Positions 42,985 through 59,022 of a DNA stretch of 64,000 nucleotides are shown in pieces (position 1 is the first letter of the stretch; each line of letters begins with the position of its first letter). A program made the position numbers and the translations under genes. The stretch lies in the sequence record NC_048053.1; one strand, given 5' to 3'. Under the pieces are notes generated by a model. That model saw only the letters and a program-made list of their open reading frames with translations, was not told the origin of the DNA and did no database searches.

Positions 42985-42989
42985 TGATC

Positions 42990-43025
42990 AAAAAAAAAGG
43001 GAACCGCGTCGTCTTCGGTTCCCTC
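42990..43025 (-). terminator. Rho-independent terminator closing the structured element
   Basis: AGGGAACCG-AAGACGACG-CGGTTCCCT followed by a run of about 10 T. Confidence 0.85.
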
Positions 43026-43029
43026 ACAG

Positions 43030-43280
43030 GGTAATAATGAATCGCTCTTTTTAGTTATGGGTAAACTCCAAAGAAACCTTTTCGAGTCGCTTTGGAGTTT
43101 ACCCGCCGGGCTGTCGGAACCCATTAGATAAACTCCCCCGCAGATTAAAGTGCGAAAGCGGGATACGCACCGGGCGAGTCTTACTGTCATTGGCCTGCCC
43201 GTGTCAGTCACTAGGCCAATGCACGCTCGCCGCTCCACAACGAACCTTCCTGCGAAAAGTTCTTGCAGCGTGAGTTTATA
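43030..43280 (-). ncRNA. Candidate structured non-coding RNA (unclassified)
   Basis: GC-rich intergenic stretch with perfect stems: ATAAACTC/GAGTTTAT, GGCGAG/CTCGCC, CATTGGCCT/AGGCCAATG, GTGCG/CGCAC, 15-bp GGGTAAACTCCAAAG/CTTTGGAGTTTACCC; ends in a terminator. Confidence 0.55.
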
Positions 43281-46184: not shown

Positions 46185-46647
46185 TTAGTTTAAAAGCACA
46201 AAGCGAAGCGACTGCAAATACGACTCACCCAAAACGTCACGATACTTAATGAGTCTGTATTGGAGAGATTCAATCCGTCCTCCAAACTGATAAGCATCGT
46301 CAATGACGAACAGGTTAGGACTATTTGCATCTTCGAACTTGTGGTATAACTCACGCAGACGATTATGAGTGAAACAAAATTCACCATCAACCGACTCGTG
46401 ATCCATAGTTAAAAGAAAGGCATTGTGTTTTGCTGCCAATTCTTTTGCGAACGTTGTGTGACCGGTTCCCGTTCCCACGCGTACAGCGAGAGTGCGCTGA
46501 TCATACAACCAGTCAGCATTAACGAAGAAAGGATCATTAAGAATAACGAAGGACTTTTCGAAGGCATTAAATAAATCCCAAAAAAGTTTTATTCATAAGC
46601 GCATAGCGCTCTTGTTGCAACGCTGCCAGACGTTCGTTGCTATTCAT
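46185..46647 (-). pseudogene. Degenerate P-loop protein gene split by an apparent +1 frameshift near 46580-46589
   Basis: 5' ORF 46647-46567 (MNSNERLAALQQERYALMNK...) has an RBS; the next frame is open from WDLFNAFEK...WLYDQRTLAVRVGTGTGHTT with no canonical start before TTG 46508; junction AAAACTTTTTTGGG. Confidence 0.5.
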
Positions 46648-46670: not shown

Positions 46671-46697
46671 GAGAAGAAAAAGCCTCCGAAGAGGCTT
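46671..46697 (-). terminator. Rho-independent terminator
   Basis: AAGCCTC-TTCG-GAGGCTT-TTTCTT directly after the stop at 46696. Confidence 0.85.
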
Positions 46698-47853
46698 AAT
46701 CCGTGCCGAATTTCACATCAAGAAATTCCATCTTGTCGTATTGAACAGTAACACCGTAAACCAACGGAGATATACGAACAAACGAAATTCCTCGAATAGT
46801 CAGATCGTGACGCACACCGCCAATTACTTTCCTTATGGCGATATCTTTGGCTTTACCGACAGTCAATGAATTCTCATGCAGTTTAAAAGAGTCCTTCACA
46901 TAGAACCGACCGAGATCTCTTTTAAAACTTAGATCATTATCGAACTTTAGTTTTTGCGTGTAACCATTCAACGCACTAACAATCAGACTGCGCGGAACAT
47001 CAGAAAAATTCTGGTCTGCGCGAATCTGCGTAGCAAGTTTGCTACTGATCTTATCTATGCGTTTTGGCGCACGATTGCCGAGGGATTTAAGATAGTCGCG
47101 ACATGCGAGTAAGGTTCCGTGAAATGCTGCGCAATATCTTTCCAAGATAATAGCTTGTTCCGCGTTACACTCTATCTCAACGCAAAAATCGCCTTCCTGC
47201 ACGGTTGCAGCATGGCGAGATTTTTCGTTACCCTGTTTTCTGCGTCTTTCGATCATGATCTTGACATACGCCGACCATGCGTAGCAAAGCGTGAGCATGA
47301 CAGGATCATCTTCTTCGATTTTGAAATGTTCAATGAACAGGGGAATACTCATGCCAATGAAAATTTCTTTCTCGATGACTGCGTTTCGAAATTCACGCAA
47401 ATCGTCATATCCATATTTGACGATTTTGTACTTCTTCCTTTCATCCTCAGAAACAGAATCTTTCTTAGGATCGTTATGATACATATCTGCCACTTGAGGC
47501 CACGAATTAATTTCGTCAGCTTTAACCTGCTTAACGATTTCGCGAGCTTCGGCAATTGTGATATCAGGCCAAGTGCGATAACTACTGGTCACGGTGTCGC
47601 GATGAAAAAATTCATACAGCGCCGCAAGTTCATAGATCTCAAGTGGCTTCTCAACTTTATCGGACTTAGGTTGTTTAGCTTTCGGCTTCGGTTTTGGCTT
47701 CTTCGCTTCAAGAACAGGAGAAACTTTATCCGGCTTTGTTTTGACTTTTTTGCTGCGAGTCGAAACGGGCAGGACTTCCAGCAACTCCCTTTCAAGATCC
47801 TCCAACGCTTTCGTCCGTGCTGTTTTCTTCGGCACGATTAAAATCTCCAACAC
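46696..47853 (-). CDS. Protein with C-terminal TnpB N-half-like (WED/REC) domain, no RuvC
   Basis: By-eye match of residues about 220-380 to the IS605 TnpB N-half: IECNAEQAIILER, FSDVPRSLIVSAL, LSFKR, FKLHENSLTVGK, IRGISFVR...YGVTVQY; ends before any RuvC-I GID motif. Confidence 0.55.
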   Translation of the reverse strand: MLEILIVPKKTARTKALEDLERELLEVLPVSTRSKKVKTKPDKVSPVLEAKKPKPKPKAKQPKSDKVEKPLEIYELAALYEFFHRDTVTSSYRTWPDITIAEAREIVKQVKADEINSWPQVADMYHNDPKKDSVSEDERKKYKIVKYGYDDLREFRNAVIEKEIFIGMSIPLFIEHFKIEEDDPVMLTLCYAWSAYVKIMIERRRKQGNEKSRHAATVQEGDFCVEIECNAEQAIILERYCAAFHGTLLACRDYLKSLGNRAPKRIDKISSKLATQIRADQNFSDVPRSLIVSALNGYTQKLKFDNDLSFKRDLGRFYVKDSFKLHENSLTVGKAKDIAIRKVIGGVRHDLTIRGISFVRISPLVYGVTVQYDKMEFLDVKFGTD

Positions 47854-47870
47854 TCTGGTTTACTCTGAAT

Positions 47871-47881
47871 ATTTACAGATT
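47871..47881 (-). promoter_or_regulatory. AATCTGTAAAT motif
   Basis: About 18 nt upstream of TTG 47853. Confidence 0.6.
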
Positions 47882-49510
47882 TGTCACCAATTGTTTGGCA
47901 GAAGAGTCGAAAGGTTTTTTCACAAACTTAATCCTATCGCTCCGCAATCTTGCGCTAGAAAGCAATGCGCCGTCATGCTCGAAGGAATAAACGTGCTTAA
48001 CACGATTTTCTTCGATGGCAGAGAACAGAAGATCAGTTTCGATTCCAGTGATCATGTGGCTTAAAATTCGCTTCCTTATTTCAGAAGTTATTTCGCCAGA
48101 CCAACTATATCGTGCGCCCACTGCGTTTGTGAGAACAAAACCGTCACCACTTTTTCTTGCGCTTTTAATATACGCTTCACACAACGCCTCAAGACTGACA
48201 ACGATTGAATGTGTTTCGCGCTCCCAACGTTCACGAATTCTTTCACACTCCGAGGAAATAAGTTTTTCGGTTAAGCGATCCAGATCTTCGAAACGAACCT
48301 TACCTTCACGACTCAATCGTTTTAACGCTCGCGAACGACACTCCTTTCGAACGCTTGCGCGAATAGATTTCATCGCTTGAGAATCAGCAATAGCAGAACG
48401 ACGCATGGTTCCACCGATACTGAACATCATCCCATAAAAACAAATCTTTGTGATCTCTTTGGGAAGATTAAACTGATTGGCGAAATCTGAAATCGAATTT
48501 GTTTCATTAAGCATTCGGCAGTGAATCTTATGGCGCTGCAACTCCATTTTTAAAATGTTGAGTTGGCTGCTTTGCATATCGACGTTATGACCTACGCAAT
48601 ACGCACGTTGTTTCAAAGCGCGAGGCAAGTTTTGAAACCCGCCTGACTCTTCAAATAAACGACCACCTAAACCACTTGCTCGATATGTTGGATAGTATTT
48701 GATGATCAGACGAGAACGTTCAACCAAAATAAAATCCTGAGACAAAAACGATAGCAAATTGCTTTGCAGTAAAATAACCCGCGCTCGAATTGATTTCCGT
48801 GTATAGTGACTGTACTTTGCAATTTCGTCAACGACTGGTCGCAAAGAAATAGTGTTTGGACTAAGTTTTGAAAGCACATCCCGATATCGCTTTATTGCGT
48901 TACGCGAGGTATTGCGATCAAATGATCTTAAATCGTGCTGAGGTGGAACCAAATTTTCTTTTCCACGTTGAACACAAATTTTCTCAATCGTTTTTCCAAA
49001 CAAATCGCCCTTTGTGAAGTGCGGCGTACAATAACGAATTTTAGTAAGAATATCCTGCGCAGATTTAGGCCGCACTGGATACATCTGTTCAAATATTTCT
49101 TCCTTGAGTTTAAAGCGTCTACACTGACCATCGCTACCGAAAAAATAAGGCGAAGCCGTGAAAACATTCTCAATTAACCAATCCAATGCGCGAGAAAAAC
49201 CTTTCCCTTTTTTAGCATACGTTCCTTTTGCGCTATAATCCCCGCTGGCACCGAAAACATAAGGTAATTCCTTTCTACCTAACGCAGTTGGAACCGGAAT
49301 AAAGGGCATTTCATTGTTATCACGAAACGTAGCGCTATACAACGAACAATGAACGATGTGCCAAAAGAATATTGATATCTGCTTTCGAAACTCTAACTCC
49401 TTATGTTCTGGCCCGTCATACGGACAAGCTAAAATGACATGTTGATTGACCCAAAATACAGTGTCATATTCCTGTAGCATGGGATTTTTGACTAGAAATG
49501 CGGTTTGCAT
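47873..49510 (-). CDS. Minimal family A polymerase-like protein (TV-Pol-like), no exonuclease
   Basis: GGRLF..SGGFQNLP, motif A DMQSSQLNIL, motif B TKICFYGMMF, SHMITGIE, motif C EHDG; ATG 49510 with GGAGAAG RBS. Confidence 0.7.
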   Translation of the reverse strand: MQTAFLVKNPMLQEYDTVFWVNQHVILACPYDGPEHKELEFRKQISIFFWHIVHCSLYSATFRDNNEMPFIPVPTALGRKELPYVFGASGDYSAKGTYAKKGKGFSRALDWLIENVFTASPYFFGSDGQCRRFKLKEEIFEQMYPVRPKSAQDILTKIRYCTPHFTKGDLFGKTIEKICVQRGKENLVPPQHDLRSFDRNTSRNAIKRYRDVLSKLSPNTISLRPVVDEIAKYSHYTRKSIRARVILLQSNLLSFLSQDFILVERSRLIIKYYPTYRASGLGGRLFEESGGFQNLPRALKQRAYCVGHNVDMQSSQLNILKMELQRHKIHCRMLNETNSISDFANQFNLPKEITKICFYGMMFSIGGTMRRSAIADSQAMKSIRASVRKECRSRALKRLSREGKVRFEDLDRLTEKLISSECERIRERWERETHSIVVSLEALCEAYIKSARKSGDGFVLTNAVGARYSWSGEITSEIRKRILSHMITGIETDLLFSAIEENRVKHVYSFEHDGALLSSARLRSDRIKFVKKPFDSSAKQLVTNL

Positions 49511-49545
49511 CCGACTTCTCCAGAAATTCCATCCTCGCCCTTCCA

Positions 49546-49556
49546 ATTTACAGATC
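49546..49556 (-). promoter_or_regulatory. ATCTGTAAAT motif
   Basis: About 36 nt upstream of ATG 49510. Confidence 0.55.
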
Positions 49557-49866
49557 TTTTTCCCCGAACCCCGTCGATCCCCAAATTTTTTCTTCACCTT
49601 GAAACTTACACAACAAACACATACACCCATACAGCATACAGAGCTACCCTAGCGCTAACAACGCAATAGGATATTCAATATAGATAACCGGGGCCCGGAT
49701 ATACATGGTAGGAGCGTTAAGTGATCACTATTATAATATGCAGAAATTCATATACCCCACTCTAGGCACTATCTACTGCCTTAGAATGCGATTCTACTCG
49801 ATCCTGCAAAAAAGTTTCGAAAGTTTCGGAATCGGGAAAGTGTGTAAAATTTTAGGTAGGTGTTCG

Positions 49867-49879
49867 TAAGTCATTGATA
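49867..49879 (-). promoter_or_regulatory. IHF consensus match in the largest intergenic gap
   Basis: TATCAATGACTTA fits WATCAANNNNTTR, with an A/T tract 5' of it on the same strand. Confidence 0.35.
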
Positions 49880-49969
49880 TGTAACAGGAATATTTTTTGC
49901 ATTGAAAAACAGAATGAGTAGATCACCATCAAAACAGCGTATAGATAGCGATCTACTCAGTAAAATGCG

Positions 49970-57632: not shown

Positions 57633-57968
57633 ATGAACACAACGAACTATGCTTCTAATATTGTGCATCGAATTTATCCGGCTTTTTGGGTTCGATTCTG
57701 TAAATTGCTGGATATAGACGTGCGCGATTATGCTGTCTTCAAAGACGGATTATTTATCGGCCTGTCCATCCCAATTCCGGAAGAGAAAACAAAAGAATTC
57801 CATGAGGAATTTGAGAAGAAGTTTTTCAATCTGGAACGCATTAGTATTGAAACAGAACCAGTGCGGCACTATGTTGTTAAACAAGGATCATTCTTTTTCG
57901 ATGTATATTTCTTCGAGAAGAACATTTCAATTGAGGTGAACAGTGCGACAAATCCGAAACTTGTATGA
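57633..57968 (+). CDS. Hypothetical protein (111 aa)
   Basis: ORF divergent from the primase. Confidence 0.7.
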   Translation: MNTTNYASNIVHRIYPAFWVRFCKLLDIDVRDYAVFKDGLFIGLSIPIPEEKTKEFHEEFEKKFFNLERISIETEPVRHYVVKQGSFFFDVYFFEKNISIEVNSATNPKLV

Positions 57969-58005
57969 CTCTCGCCAGCTTTCGCGTGTCGGGCGATTAA
58001 TTGAT

Positions 58006-59022
58006 ATGGCGCTTGATGTTACTGTTCCGGAAAAACGTTACCCGAAGAAACGCGTTAGTCCTAGTATGTTTCCAATTTGCAGTATTCAGGAATATGCTGC
58101 ACGACTCTACGAAAAACATAACAAACATCTTTCGGGTGAGTCTGGAACCATGCTAAACATTTTTGCCAAAGCGGGAACGGGAATGCACGAAAGCATTCAA
58201 AACGCTTTAGGCAATACCGGGCAAATGGTTGGTCATTGGAAATGCAGTAATCCTGATTGCCCGGAACACGCAAAAACAAAAAGCGTGTATGAAAATGGCA
58301 AGCGTATTAAAAAAGGAAAACATACGCGCACACACTCTTGCGACAATATTTGTCCGAAGTGCAAAAAACCAATGGCGTATAGTGAACTAAAAGTTCTCTA
58401 CAAAAGTTTGAAAGGATATGTAGATGGACTGATCGACAACCTTGATGGAACTTACAGTCTTATTGACTTGAAAAGTACCACTGTCACGAAAGCGGCAGAC
58501 GGAACTTTCTTTGTTAAATATCATCGTTATCAGATCGCAACTTACGCATACATTCTCAAAAAACGCTACGGCTACAACATCGTTGATTATACGCTTGTGT
58601 ACGTTCCTCGCGACAACCCGAAAAAATTCGTTGAGAAAAGTTTTAAATTCGACGAAGCAGAATCTAAAATCGCATATAAATTTATGATGAAACAGATTCG
58701 CGCTTGGGATGCCGTGATGAAATCCGTTCGTAAAAAAGATCCTTCATACGCAATCGAAAAGAAACCGTGCAAATCTCCTGAATACTATTGGGATGAGTTT
58801 CATAAATACGACACTTGCCCTTTTGTAGATCACTGTTTCATTACTTCTCGTATGGTTGCGTTTTTGGAGGAAATGGAAAAACGAATTATGGCAAATCCTT
58901 CTCTGTCTTTCGCCGAAGTGGTGAAAACAAATCCATCTGCTGTTAAGAAAATGGAAGGTGGCCTTTTGCCTAAAAAGCAAAAGAAAACAGAGAAGCGCAT
59001 CGTAAAACAATTTGAACTTTGA
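58006..59022 (+). CDS. Cas4-like/RecB-family PD-(D/E)XK exonuclease
   Basis: SPSMFPIC, GTGMHE, GYVDGL, LIDLKS, QIATY, C-terminal C.....W......CPF...C; Zn-finger-like insert WKC..PDC...CDNICPKC. Start uncertain. Confidence 0.85.
   Translation: MALDVTVPEKRYPKKRVSPSMFPICSIQEYAARLYEKHNKHLSGESGTMLNIFAKAGTGMHESIQNALGNTGQMVGHWKCSNPDCPEHAKTKSVYENGKRIKKGKHTRTHSCDNICPKCKKPMAYSELKVLYKSLKGYVDGLIDNLDGTYSLIDLKSTTVTKAADGTFFVKYHRYQIATYAYILKKRYGYNIVDYTLVYVPRDNPKKFVEKSFKFDEAESKIAYKFMMKQIRAWDAVMKSVRKKDPSYAIEKKPCKSPEYYWDEFHKYDTCPFVDHCFITSRMVAFLEEMEKRIMANPSLSFAEVVKTNPSAVKKMEGGLLPKKQKKTEKRIVKQFEL

Follow-up and report, generated by a model that had tools for sequence, protein, structure and literature searches.

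Can the recognition lobe of TnpB persist in a phage genome apart from its nuclease? TnpB is a transposon nuclease and the ancestor of Cas12, and its WED+REC lobe recognizes the TAM in double-stranded DNA and holds the guide:target duplex at its TAM-proximal part. The question is raised by JA29_201, a gene annotated as a hypothetical protein in the 253 kb genome of Dickeya phage vB_DsoM_JA29, whose host in the laboratory is D. solani MK10. We analyzed a 64,000-nucleotide stretch of this genome (NC_048053.1), which we refer to as the window. A first-pass annotation had noticed, by eye, a likeness between the C-terminal part of the product and the N-terminal half of TnpB, and had suggested a domesticated derivative that lacks RuvC. 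We show here, on the basis of profile comparison and predicted fold, that the C-terminal ∼165 residues of JA29_201 are homologous to the TnpB/Cas12 WED+REC lobe.

Layout of JA29_201

The open reading frame first noticed is present at 46696..47853 on the minus strand and contains the annotated coding sequence (Table 1). We place the start of JA29_201 at the GTG at 47835, in agreement with the annotation, because all homologues begin MPxKKAR and a GGAG ribosome-binding site lies just upstream. The 385-aa numbering of the first-pass annotation, used in Table 1 for the C-terminal features, begins at 47853, which is 18 nt upstream of this start.

Table 1. Coordinates of JA29_201, its parts, and adjacent features in the window
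Feature	Position	Strand	Details and basis
CDS JA29_201	46696..47835	-	379 aa plus stop; annotation
Shine-Dalgarno GGAG	47845..47848	-	9 nt 5' of GTG 47835; read from sequence
Lys/Pro-rich N-terminal segment	47650..47835	-	residues 1-62 of 379; predicted disordered
Middle all-helical domain	47212..47649	-	residues 63-208 of 379; secondary structure
WED strand beta1	47170..47196	-	~residues 220-228 (385-aa numbering); AF2 model E8-14
REC-like helical insert	46909..47169	-	~residues 229-315 (385-aa numbering); model H17-47, H57-66, H74-88
WED strands beta2-beta7	46735..46908	-	~residues 316-373 (385-aa numbering); model E102-158
Short C-terminal helix and tail	46699..46734	-	model H160-168
Promoter-like motif AATCTGTAAAT	47871..47881	-	36-46 nt before JA29_201 start codon
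Intrinsic-terminator-like hairpin and T-run	46680..46697	-	7 bp, 4 GC; overlaps JA29_201 stop codon
JA29_202	47873..49510	-	545 aa, phrog_30690, function unknown; PHROG match

The N-terminal segment (pI 10.1, pLDDT <50) varies in length across the family, and in the alignments the distant members have a short one or none. The helical domain that follows (pI 5.9) is conserved inside the family, with E81, P96, L172, and W193 invariant in the family alignment, and gave no match above threshold in Pfam, PHROG, NCBIfam, PADLOC, or the PDB. The TnpB-like part had been described as fused behind a novel domain; consistent with this, relatives of the N-terminal 210 residues were not detected outside the family. 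The C-terminal domain is basic (pI 9.0). Its beta1 strand is aligned by hhalign with TnpB residues 6-12, its REC-like insert comprises three to four helices, and beta2-beta7 complete a predicted seven-stranded barrel. The insert contains the invariant P287-R288-S289 (385-aa numbering), which in the hhalign register opens the helix aligned to the TAM-reading helix of ISDra2 TnpB, where the TAM residues are K76, F77, and Q80 (PMC10097598); R288 is paired with K76. Only Salmondvirus-like members have the C-terminal helix and tail, distant members ending earlier; this is the position where TnpB would run on into RuvC.

Homology with the TnpB recognition lobe

Conventional searches return little for this protein. 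Scans of JA29_201 and its 15 close homologues against Pfam, PHROGs, NCBIfam, and PADLOC gave zero matches above threshold, and phmmer/hmmsearch against PDB sequences yielded low-complexity or noise matches only (Noc, NLRP3). An exhaustive HMM search of 1.84 billion representatives recovered six family clusters, with TnpB absent and no longer, RuvC-bearing intermediate; at the HMMER level there is no family-TnpB link either in this set or in Pfam. Comparison of the family profile with a 19-sequence TnpB profile by hhalign, a single prespecified comparison between two shallow profiles (Neff ∼3-4), gave Prob 89.9, E 1.7e-6, and a score of 49.4 over 149 columns. The alignment is collinear, pairing family residues 222-374 with InsQ residues 6-168, and takes in the REC bundle, so that the profile similarity extends over the N-terminal ∼170 residues of TnpB. 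Reversed profiles score 17, and column or block shuffles have means of 13-15 and a maximum of 25.5; the family-TnpB score lies ∼13 sd above the shuffled controls. We note that the diverse TnpBs for this profile were drawn from phage records, the InsQ relatives found being all at least 59% identical, and that an earlier comparison with a profile of low diversity, drawn from the InsQ clade, fell short of significance (E 0.6) although its register was identical. All five correspondences first drawn by eye (the beta1/first-helix segment, the DVPRSL helix, FKR, FKL..N.L, and the last two strands) are recovered by hhalign with order and register unchanged.

The predicted structure corroborates the profile comparison. 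An AlphaFold (AF2) model of the last 171 residues (m6dd0daba70f9), built without templates and with family sequences as the sole input, has a pLDDT of 89.4 and a pTM of 0.85. It runs from beta1 through helices to six further strands; the seven strands together make up a barrel, and the helices are inserted between the first strand and the second. In ISDra2 TnpB the WED is a seven-stranded OB barrel and REC sits between beta1 and beta2 (PMC10097598); the predicted topology of the JA29_201 C-domain, an OB-fold WED split by REC after beta1, matches this arrangement. With this model as the query, Foldseek ranks 1-14 in the PDB are exclusively TnpB, Cas12f, Cas12k, Cas12n, TranC, or dCas12f, including Cas12k (8axb/8axa) and dCas12f (9n9c), and unrelated proteins enter from E ∼0.2. 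The best matches, 8ex9_A and 8exa_A (E 1.2e-4, probability 1.00, TMq 0.58-0.60; for 8ex9_A, TMq 0.58 and TMt 0.60), are modest in strength, with E 1e-4, TM ∼0.6 over the whole domain, RMSD ∼5 Å, and identity of 13-17%. The top match is an ISDra2 TnpB structure in which WED/REC is the sole resolved part. A poorer model of full-length JA29_201 still ranked three ISDra2 TnpB entries on top, and in a BFVD structural search the family members were followed by viral TnpB/Fanzor "transposases". Structure and profile searches thus return a specific TnpB/Cas12 WED-REC match, as the proposal of the first-pass annotation required.

The absent nuclease lobe and the genomic setting

The family-TnpB alignment ends ∼15 residues short of the first aspartate of RuvC, as had been surmised when the protein was said to stop where RuvC-I would begin. 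This aspartate is D183 in InsQ, a position that JA29_201 does not reach, and RuvC of ISDra2 TnpB begins at residue 185 (PMC10097598); the distant family members terminate right after the last WED strand. Even with E allowed to reach 10, the Pfam OrfB models (PF12323, PF01385) and the TNB model (PF07282) find no match in any of the 15 family members, while InsQ relatives match all three. No RuvC or zinc-finger part was found in JA29_201 or its neighbors. A split gene with the RuvC half in a neighbor was considered and rejected, because neither JA29_202 nor eight neighbors match the TnpB profile; a tblastn search of the window with 19 TnpBs gave noise only. With RuvC and its D-E-D catalytic triad as well as TNB wholly absent, JA29_201 cannot cut DNA in the manner of TnpB. 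No omega-RNA locus is evident at the gene's 3' end or beyond it, where the downstream gap is ∼50-190 nt, and an Rfam scan of the window gave zero matches, though such an RNA might be encoded elsewhere. The transposon context of TnpB is likewise absent: downstream, no TnpA, IS ends, or RuvC remnant was found, and no transposase is annotated nearby.

The family comprises 15 close homologues and 5 distant ones; each is intact and 309-390 aa long. In 22 phage records the gene is single copy and occupies the identical genomic slot, and its synteny holds across at least three genera of jumbo phages, between which identity is ∼27%. Its range amounts to six clusters at 50% identity, confined to one phage lineage. 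Between JA29 and JA13, dN/dS is 0.12 for the whole gene and 0.08 for the C-domain, values from which we judge that JA29_201 is under purifying selection. A check for frameshifted or missing orthologues thus found intact, syntenic ones. Genes nearby include those for a clamp loader and a Holliday-junction resolvase.

JA29_202 always lies directly upstream of the family gene, in JA13, JA33, Yoloswag, pEa_SNUABM_5, and metagenomic contigs. Homologues of JA29_202 in Alexandravirus, Sasquatchvirus, and fHe-Yen9-02 are instead followed by a different protein of 155-174 aa, for which neither the family nor TnpB gave a significant match. The link between JA29_201 and JA29_202 is positional only. The idea that JA29_202 is a divergent family-A polymerase is no more than a weak lead: its sole support is motif-B-like matches to Pol gamma at E 0.5-2, and hhalign against the window's own PolA was no better than shuffles. 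The 460-nt intergenic region 5' of JA29_202 is mildly structured (z -2.6); its position is kept across genera and its sequence is not, except for a TGTAAA motif. The proposal that JA29_201 serves specifically to read the TGTAAAT motif loses force, since phages without the family have this motif in front of their JA29_202 homologues as well.

The gene also carries its own apparent expression signals, as the first-pass annotation had claimed. The AATCTGTAAAT motif is real: with at most one mismatch, the window contains 11 sites against 2.07 expected, a number that 0 of 100 shuffles reach, and every site lies upstream of a gene start and is oriented with that gene. The JA29_201 site overlaps the stop codon of upstream JA29_202, and the other sites precede genes that include those for a DNA polymerase, an SbcD-like nuclease, the clamp loader, a primase, and a sigma factor. 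The terminator said to follow the stop was found as a hairpin with a T-run (Table 1). Elsewhere in JA29, 3.4 kb from JA29_201, a 290-nt noncoding element (42985-43275), the candidate RNA to which the first-pass annotation had pointed, is strongly structured and highly conserved; it is not detectable in the Yoloswag or Rivsvirus loci that encode the family protein.

Relation to known systems and possible roles

JA29_201 shares with TnpB (ISDra2, PDB 8EX9/8EXA/8H1J; E. coli InsQ) a WED+REC lobe collinear with TnpB residues 6 to ∼168. It differs in its 210 extra N-terminal residues, in the loss of the nuclease lobe, and in being fixed at one copy per genome without an omega-RNA locus, IS ends, or TnpA. 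Like the TldRs, including the prophage-encoded fliC-associated ones, it would be an immobile, domesticated, noncutting TnpB derivative, phage-encoded and with a conserved neighbor gene. TldR and dCas12f are nuclease-dead TnpB/Cas12f derivatives that keep RNA-guided binding, some of them C-terminally truncated (10.1101/2023.11.30.569447; PMC10691335). Save for mutated residues and some C-terminal trimming, however, the RuvC fold of TldRs is largely intact, as is their RNA interface, and a guide-RNA gene lies alongside (10.1101/2023.11.30.569447), whereas JA29_201 has neither a RuvC scaffold with a degraded site nor any guide locus that we could see. JA29_201 resides in the replication module of a lytic-type jumbo phage rather than in a prophage cargo locus. 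Cas12k (type V-K CAST), Cas12m, and sigma-factor-associated dCas12f also reuse the recognition machinery without cleavage, but all still have a guide RNA and retain the RuvC lobe in inactive form, and none is cut down to WED+REC (PMC10691335). The Fanzor/TnpB "transposases" of giant viruses and phages belong to the same superfamily and are virus-encoded, but they are full length, RuvC-containing, and usually mobile, whereas the TnpB-like part of JA29_201 is half-sized and genome-fixed. Our literature search turned up no RuvC-less TnpB derivative.

To our minds, there is a somewhat better than even chance that JA29_201 is a TnpB-derived, noncatalytic protein that binds nucleic acids and serves in phage DNA replication, in recombination, or in the control of middle genes. 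Homology and charge suggest nucleic-acid binding, and the genomic context favors a housekeeping role of this kind within the replication gene set. An ancestor of the Salmondvirus/Yoloswagvirus/Rivsvirus lineage would have captured TnpB, or its 5' half, and retained the recognition lobe alone, joined to the phage-specific helical domain (∼145 residues). The protein would most probably bind duplex DNA, RNA:DNA, or a primer-template junction directly, without a dedicated guide RNA, and the helical domain may contact a partner, for which the co-located JA29_202 is the obvious candidate. Since the RuvC lobe is needed for much of the omega-RNA and heteroduplex binding in TnpB (PMC10097598), the binding range of the isolated lobe is uncertain. 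We think it improbable, though worth stating, that the WED+REC lobe, perhaps with the helical domain, suffices both for holding phage RNA or an RNA:DNA hybrid and for recognizing a short duplex motif, with a possible part in the start or regulation of replication and possibly together with JA29_202.

A minimal RNA-guided DNA binder, in which WED/REC holds a phage-encoded guide and targets TAM-adjacent DNA to repress or mark it, would have precedents in TldR and dCas12f, which remain RNA-guided after nuclease loss (10.1101/2023.11.30.569447; PMC10691335), and would suit both the contacts of the TnpB WED with omega-RNA stem 4 and the pseudoknot (PMC10097598) and the presence of the structured, conserved 290-nt element. 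It is nevertheless unlikely. The 3' end leaves no room for a guide locus, with the terminator on the stop codon and the next gene within ∼50 nt in JA13 and JA33, Rfam finds nothing in the window, and the 290-nt element does not accompany the family into the Yoloswag and Rivsvirus loci. In TnpB, moreover, the RuvC lobe makes the majority of contacts with the scaffold and forms one half of the heteroduplex channel (PMC10097598), and most of that fold, with the RNA interface, is what the known TldRs still have (10.1101/2023.11.30.569447). Host-defense mimics are common in phages, and the C-domain corresponds to the half of type V effectors that binds RNA and the PAM, so JA29_201 might be an antidefense decoy that soaks up guide RNAs or occupies PAM/TAM sites. 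We hold this to be very unlikely. An antidefense gene would be expected to be accessory, patchy in distribution, and fast-evolving and to match known families, whereas this gene has a core profile: a fixed slot amid replication and recombination genes in no fewer than three genera, purifying selection, and a AATCTGTAAAT motif in common with replication genes. PADLOC gave one subthreshold match and Pfam Gad1 a match in 1 of 15 members (E 0.004), neither of them meaningful. In addition, the Dickeya and Erwinia hosts are known for type I rather than type V CRISPR systems.

With a tnpB-like gene represented by its 5' half alone, JA29_201 could also be read as a decaying IS200/IS605 remnant, a truncated tnpB pseudogene. 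This is scarcely credible for a single-copy, syntenic gene that is intact in every relative and in frame with a conserved 210-residue N-terminal part, that has a dN/dS of 0.08-0.12 and is served by a promoter-like motif, a ribosome-binding site, and a terminator of its own, and that is without IS context; the first-pass annotation had dismissed decay on similar grounds. A resemblance arising otherwise than by TnpB descent, either as a convergent split OB barrel or through kinship with an older nucleic-acid-binding module from which TnpB arose, draws on the low identity (11-17%), the missing HMMER link, the failure to find a RuvC-bearing intermediate, and the commonness of OB folds. We consider it improbable. 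Convergence is unlikely given 149 collinear columns that score far above shuffles and structural matches confined to TnpB/Cas12/Fanzor in two libraries (PDB and BFVD). The evolutionary direction could be either loss of RuvC or kinship with a pre-TnpB module; because TnpB is ubiquitous and the family is limited to its six clusters in one phage lineage, derivation from TnpB appears the more economical course, judged from the distribution of sequences.

JA29_201, in the reading we prefer, looks like a previously undescribed way of reusing the RNA-guided nuclease TnpB. The TnpB exaptations described so far (Cas12 effectors, Cas12k, Cas12m, TldR, and sigma-associated dCas12f) all keep the RuvC scaffold, and a recognition-lobe-only protein would make WED+REC an autonomous, transferable module. 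Should the lobe indeed hold RNA or a hybrid, the protein would be the smallest natural TnpB descendant that is RNA-assisted or reads R-loops or primer junctions. JA29_201 is a natural start for asking what the recognition lobe binds alone, which bears on the origin of TnpB and Cas12 and on very small DNA-binding tools. TnpB domestication in phages would extend past prophage cargo to the replication genes of lytic-type jumbo phages, and the homology provides a first functional handle on the uncharacterized core pair JA29_202/JA29_201 of the PaBG/Lu11-like "Lupandier" jumbo phages.

Gene model and conservation of JA29_201

JA29_201, the Dickeya phage vB_DsoM_JA29 protein under study, is annotated as a hypothetical protein. 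By megablast, the window is 100% identical to positions 124001–188000 of this phage (MH460461, 253 kb, genus Salmondvirus). The homologues of JA29_201 all start at MPxKKAR, and the GTG at 47835 has a GGAG 9 nt upstream, so we take the product to be 379 aa rather than the 385 aa of the mechanical ORF. By tblastn, 22 phage records carry one copy of the gene each, always at ∼170–184 kb in genomes of ∼253–267 kb; they belong to Dickeya Salmondvirus, Erwinia Yoloswagvirus, Rivsvirus, and further pEa_SNUABM phages. The homologues, 15 close (48–70% identity) and five distant (23–38%), are all full length (309–390 aa). Gene order is kept across phages, running from a divergently transcribed Holliday-junction resolvase through two unknown genes, a gap of ∼450–500 nt, the ∼550-aa JA29_202, and JA29_201 to small genes, a peptidase, and the clamp loader; metagenomic contigs have the identical order around JA29_201. 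By the Nei-Gojobori method, dN/dS against JA13 comes to 0.12 for the whole gene and 0.08 for its TnpB-like domain; against JA33, where dS is near saturation, it is ∼0.25. The full-length homologues, one-copy synteny, and low dN/dS rule out a decaying IS; to the first-pass annotation, too, the gene did not look like one.

Neither JA29_201 nor its 15 close homologues gave an above-threshold match in Pfam, PHROGs, NCBIfam, or PADLOC, and sequence searches of the PDB returned noise. Searched exhaustively with an HMM, 1.84 billion cluster representatives yielded six clusters of the family itself, which is small, and no TnpB. Routine annotation could therefore neither make nor break the proposed TnpB relationship, and its blindness to this protein made fold and profile–profile tests necessary.

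A domain resembling the TnpB recognition lobe

Against a shallow, InsQ-like TnpB profile, hhalign placed the family in the expected register, which was not significant (E 0.6). A diverse profile of 19 TnpB sequences, twelve phage-borne (25–37% identical to InsQ) and seven of the InsQ clade, matched the C-terminal domain of the family with Prob 89.9, E 1.7e-6, and a score of 49.4 over 149 collinear columns (family 222–374, InsQ 6–168). Reversed profiles scored 17; shuffling the columns of either profile sixty times gave a mean of 13–14 (maximum 25.5), and block shuffles averaged 15 (maximum 22). All five TnpB segment pairs originally matched by eye are recovered in this alignment, which ends ∼15 residues short of RuvC-I in InsQ (the GxDxG motif, D183). 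In distant family members the protein ends right after the last WED strand. The invariant P287-R288-S289 forms the N-terminus of a helix aligned with the ISDra2 helix bearing the TAM-reading residues K76, F77, and Q80, whose mutation abolishes or lowers cleavage (PMC10097598). R288 aligns to ISDra2 position 76, a tentative residue-level mapping.

The AlphaFold model of full-length JA29_201 is mediocre (pLDDT 61), with a C-terminal half of strand, helices, and strands; its three best PDB matches, at E 1.4e-3 to 4e-2, are all entries for ISDra2 TnpB, and noise sets in at E 0.6. Residues 215–385 (ORF numbering), modeled alone from 18 aligned sequences, five of them distant family members, gave a confident prediction (pLDDT 89.4, pTM 0.85; five models 88.9–89.4) of a single strand followed by three to four helices, another six strands, and a terminal helix. 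This predicted topology agrees with that of ISDra2 TnpB, in which WED is a seven-stranded OB-fold barrel (residues 1–12 and 117–176) with a flanking helix, the four REC helices (13–116) are inserted between β1 and β2, and RuvC starts at residue 185 (Nakagawa et al., PMC10097598). Among 350,542 PDB chains, Foldseek ranks 1–14 are all TnpB (ISDra2, ISFba1), Cas12f, Cas12k, Cas12n, TranC, or dCas12f, with probabilities of 0.84–1.00 and TMq of 0.40–0.60. Rank 1, 8ex9_A, is an ISDra2 complex resolved only in its WED/REC part (166 residues); the TM of 0.58/0.60 under the two normalizations indicates that the phage domain matches the recognition lobe in full, with nothing beyond it. In BFVD, the family members JA11 and Yoloswag are followed by viral TnpB/Fanzor-type “transposases”. 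Homology of the domain to the TnpB WED/REC lobe is thus very probable; the first-pass observation is confirmed, and its reading of the protein's identity holds at the level of profiles and predicted fold.

The N-terminal part is of another kind. Residues 1–62 are Lys/Pro-rich, basic (pI 10.1), predicted to be disordered, and variable in length, being short or missing in distant members. Residues 63–208 make up a helical domain (pI 5.9) that is conserved, E81, P96, L172, and W193 being invariant; Pfam, PHROGs, NCBIfam, PADLOC, PDB-sequence, and HMM searches detected no relatives of it, in keeping with the suggestion that the TnpB-like half is fused behind a novel domain.

JA29_201 has no RuvC, TNB domain, or Pfam OrfB match. 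JA29_202 and eight neighboring proteins compare with the TnpB profile at noise level (hhalign), and 19 TnpBs found no tblastn match in the whole window, which upholds the claim that the nuclease half is missing. The terminator noted in the first pass is seen as a terminator-like hairpin directly 3′ of the gene, and in JA13 and JA33 the gap to the next gene is ∼50 nt, which together leave no space for a 3′ omega-RNA. An Rfam scan of the window gave no match, and neither a transposase nor a second copy was found in the annotations of the JA29/JA13/JA33 region or by tblastn in phage records. Because these defining features are absent, JA29_201 is not a TnpB, TldR, or Cas12; of the two lobes of those proteins, one has a homologue in it. 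The many exaptations in a TnpB/Cas12 census all keep RuvC, whether active, rearranged, or inactivated (PMC10691335), whereas JA29_201 lacks it. In TldRs the C-terminal ZnF/RuvC segment may be lost, yet overall fold, RNA interface, and adjacent guide are retained (10.1101/2023.11.30.569447); JA29_201 has no RuvC, and no guide locus is seen next to it. Full-text searches on TnpB in jumbo phages and on RuvC-less WED/REC proteins found no JA29_201-like protein described. TnpB is unmentioned in the jumbo-phage survey of Iyer et al. (PMC7824862), and the PaBG/Lu11 “Lupandier” (PMC7412058) and JA phage (PMC6143709) papers treat the region only as hypothetical genes.

Upstream motif and neighborhood

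The upstream motif ascribed to JA29_201, AATCTGTAAAT, is over-represented in the window (11 sites, 2.07 expected), and each site, on the strand of the gene concerned, precedes its start codon by a few tens of nt. Behind these sites lie two DNA-polymerase-family genes, an SbcD-like nuclease, a GTP-binding-domain protein, the clamp loader, the primase, a phage sigma factor, JA29_202, and JA29_201 itself. We read the motif as a putative promoter element for the replication (“middle”) genes, among them JA29_201. In Yoloswag, pEa_SNUABM_5, Alexandra, Y3, and AD1, the JA29_202 homologue likewise has a TGTAAA(T/A) core upstream; since Alexandra, Y3, and AD1 lack the family, JA29_201 is unlikely to be the dedicated reader of the motif.

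Features at and around JA29_201 (L179–L185: loci of related phages with a JA29_202 homologue and without the JA29_201 family)
Feature	Position	Strand	Details
JA29_201, mechanical ORF	46696..47853	-	
JA29_202	47873-49510	-	conserved, 545 aa, phrog_30690; in 41 phage records of the jumbo-phage group
Non-coding gap upstream of JA29_202	49511-49969	-	∼460 nt
JA29_200, AAA-ATPase-like	46185-46647	-	frameshift split near 46582-46589
Intergenic element	42985-43275	-	290 nt, between JA29_195 and the clamp-loader promoter
Cas4/RecB-like gene	57943-59019	+	phrog_1706, “CRISPR/Cas system associated”; adjoins primase
AATCTGTAAAT sites	4273, 12485, 28268, 28906, 42974, 47871, 49546, 57616	-	
AATCTGTAAAT sites	57695, 62762, 63854	+	
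Slot proteins	L179:5075-5572, L180:5060-5584, L181-L185		Alexandra, fHe-Yen9-02, AD1, Y3, pEa_SNUABM_17/32/34

The JA13 and JA33 annotations under-call JA29_202, which tblastn finds there at full length. JA29_202 has ordered motifs resembling motifs A, B, and C of family-A polymerases; the only database matches in support are to Pol-gamma motif B at E 0.5–2, and comparison with the window's PolA is at noise level (hhalign). At loci lacking the TnpB-like family, the slot protein that comes directly after the JA29_202 homologue is 155–174 aa long and looks unrelated; it comes in three sequence types and may be a non-homologous replacement. The gap upstream of JA29_202 is kept in position across genera (390–500 nt), not in sequence; a long hairpin resembling a terminator lies at its start, its structure is mild (z −2.6), and it could be a regulatory region or origin. 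The split in JA29_200, judged against the intact 154-aa JA13_198 and JA33_198, is either a real disruption or a JA29 sequencing error. For the Cas4/RecB-like gene, an equivalent feature is reported in phage PaBG (PMC7412058); we noticed no CRISPR array in the window.

Possible function and origin

In TnpB, the protein-only contacts to the TAM duplex come from the WED/REC lobe, which also supports the first guide:target base pairs; RuvC contributes half of the hybrid channel and the majority of omega-RNA scaffold contacts (PMC10097598). The activity most likely to outlast the loss of RuvC would therefore be one that reads duplex DNA, or a duplex/hybrid junction, directly. The helical domain and basic tail would supply partner contacts and non-specific affinity, and JA29_201 would act as a non-catalytic nucleic-acid-binding factor in the phage DNA-metabolism program.

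RNA-guided binding in the manner of TldR seems unlikely, with guide locus and RuvC interface both missing. A potential RNA partner is offered by the 290-nt intergenic element, which folds far better than shuffles (z −4.1), has a 3′ hairpin and U-run, and is ∼95% identical in JA33, JA11, and JA13, nearby proteins being far more diverged. However, nhmmer did not find this element in the Yoloswag and Rivsvirus loci that bear the protein, or in Alexandra; it has no Rfam match and looks like a Salmondvirus-specific structured RNA. The least likely of the functions first suggested, a decoy against Cas12/TnpB systems, is very improbable for a core, slow-evolving protein whose upstream motif is common to replication genes. 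Identity of just 11–17% would suit convergence on, or descent from a module predating, TnpB; together these are improbable, and convergence is countered by the profile–profile score and exclusive match lists.

We consider it fairly probable that JA29_201 originated as a captured TnpB that lost RuvC, and the full proposal, that this recognition-lobe derivative serves as a non-catalytic nucleic-acid-binding factor of phage DNA metabolism, seems to us slightly better than even. On its predicted fold, JA29_201 would represent a TnpB domestication pared to the recognition lobe and joined to a phage-specific domain.
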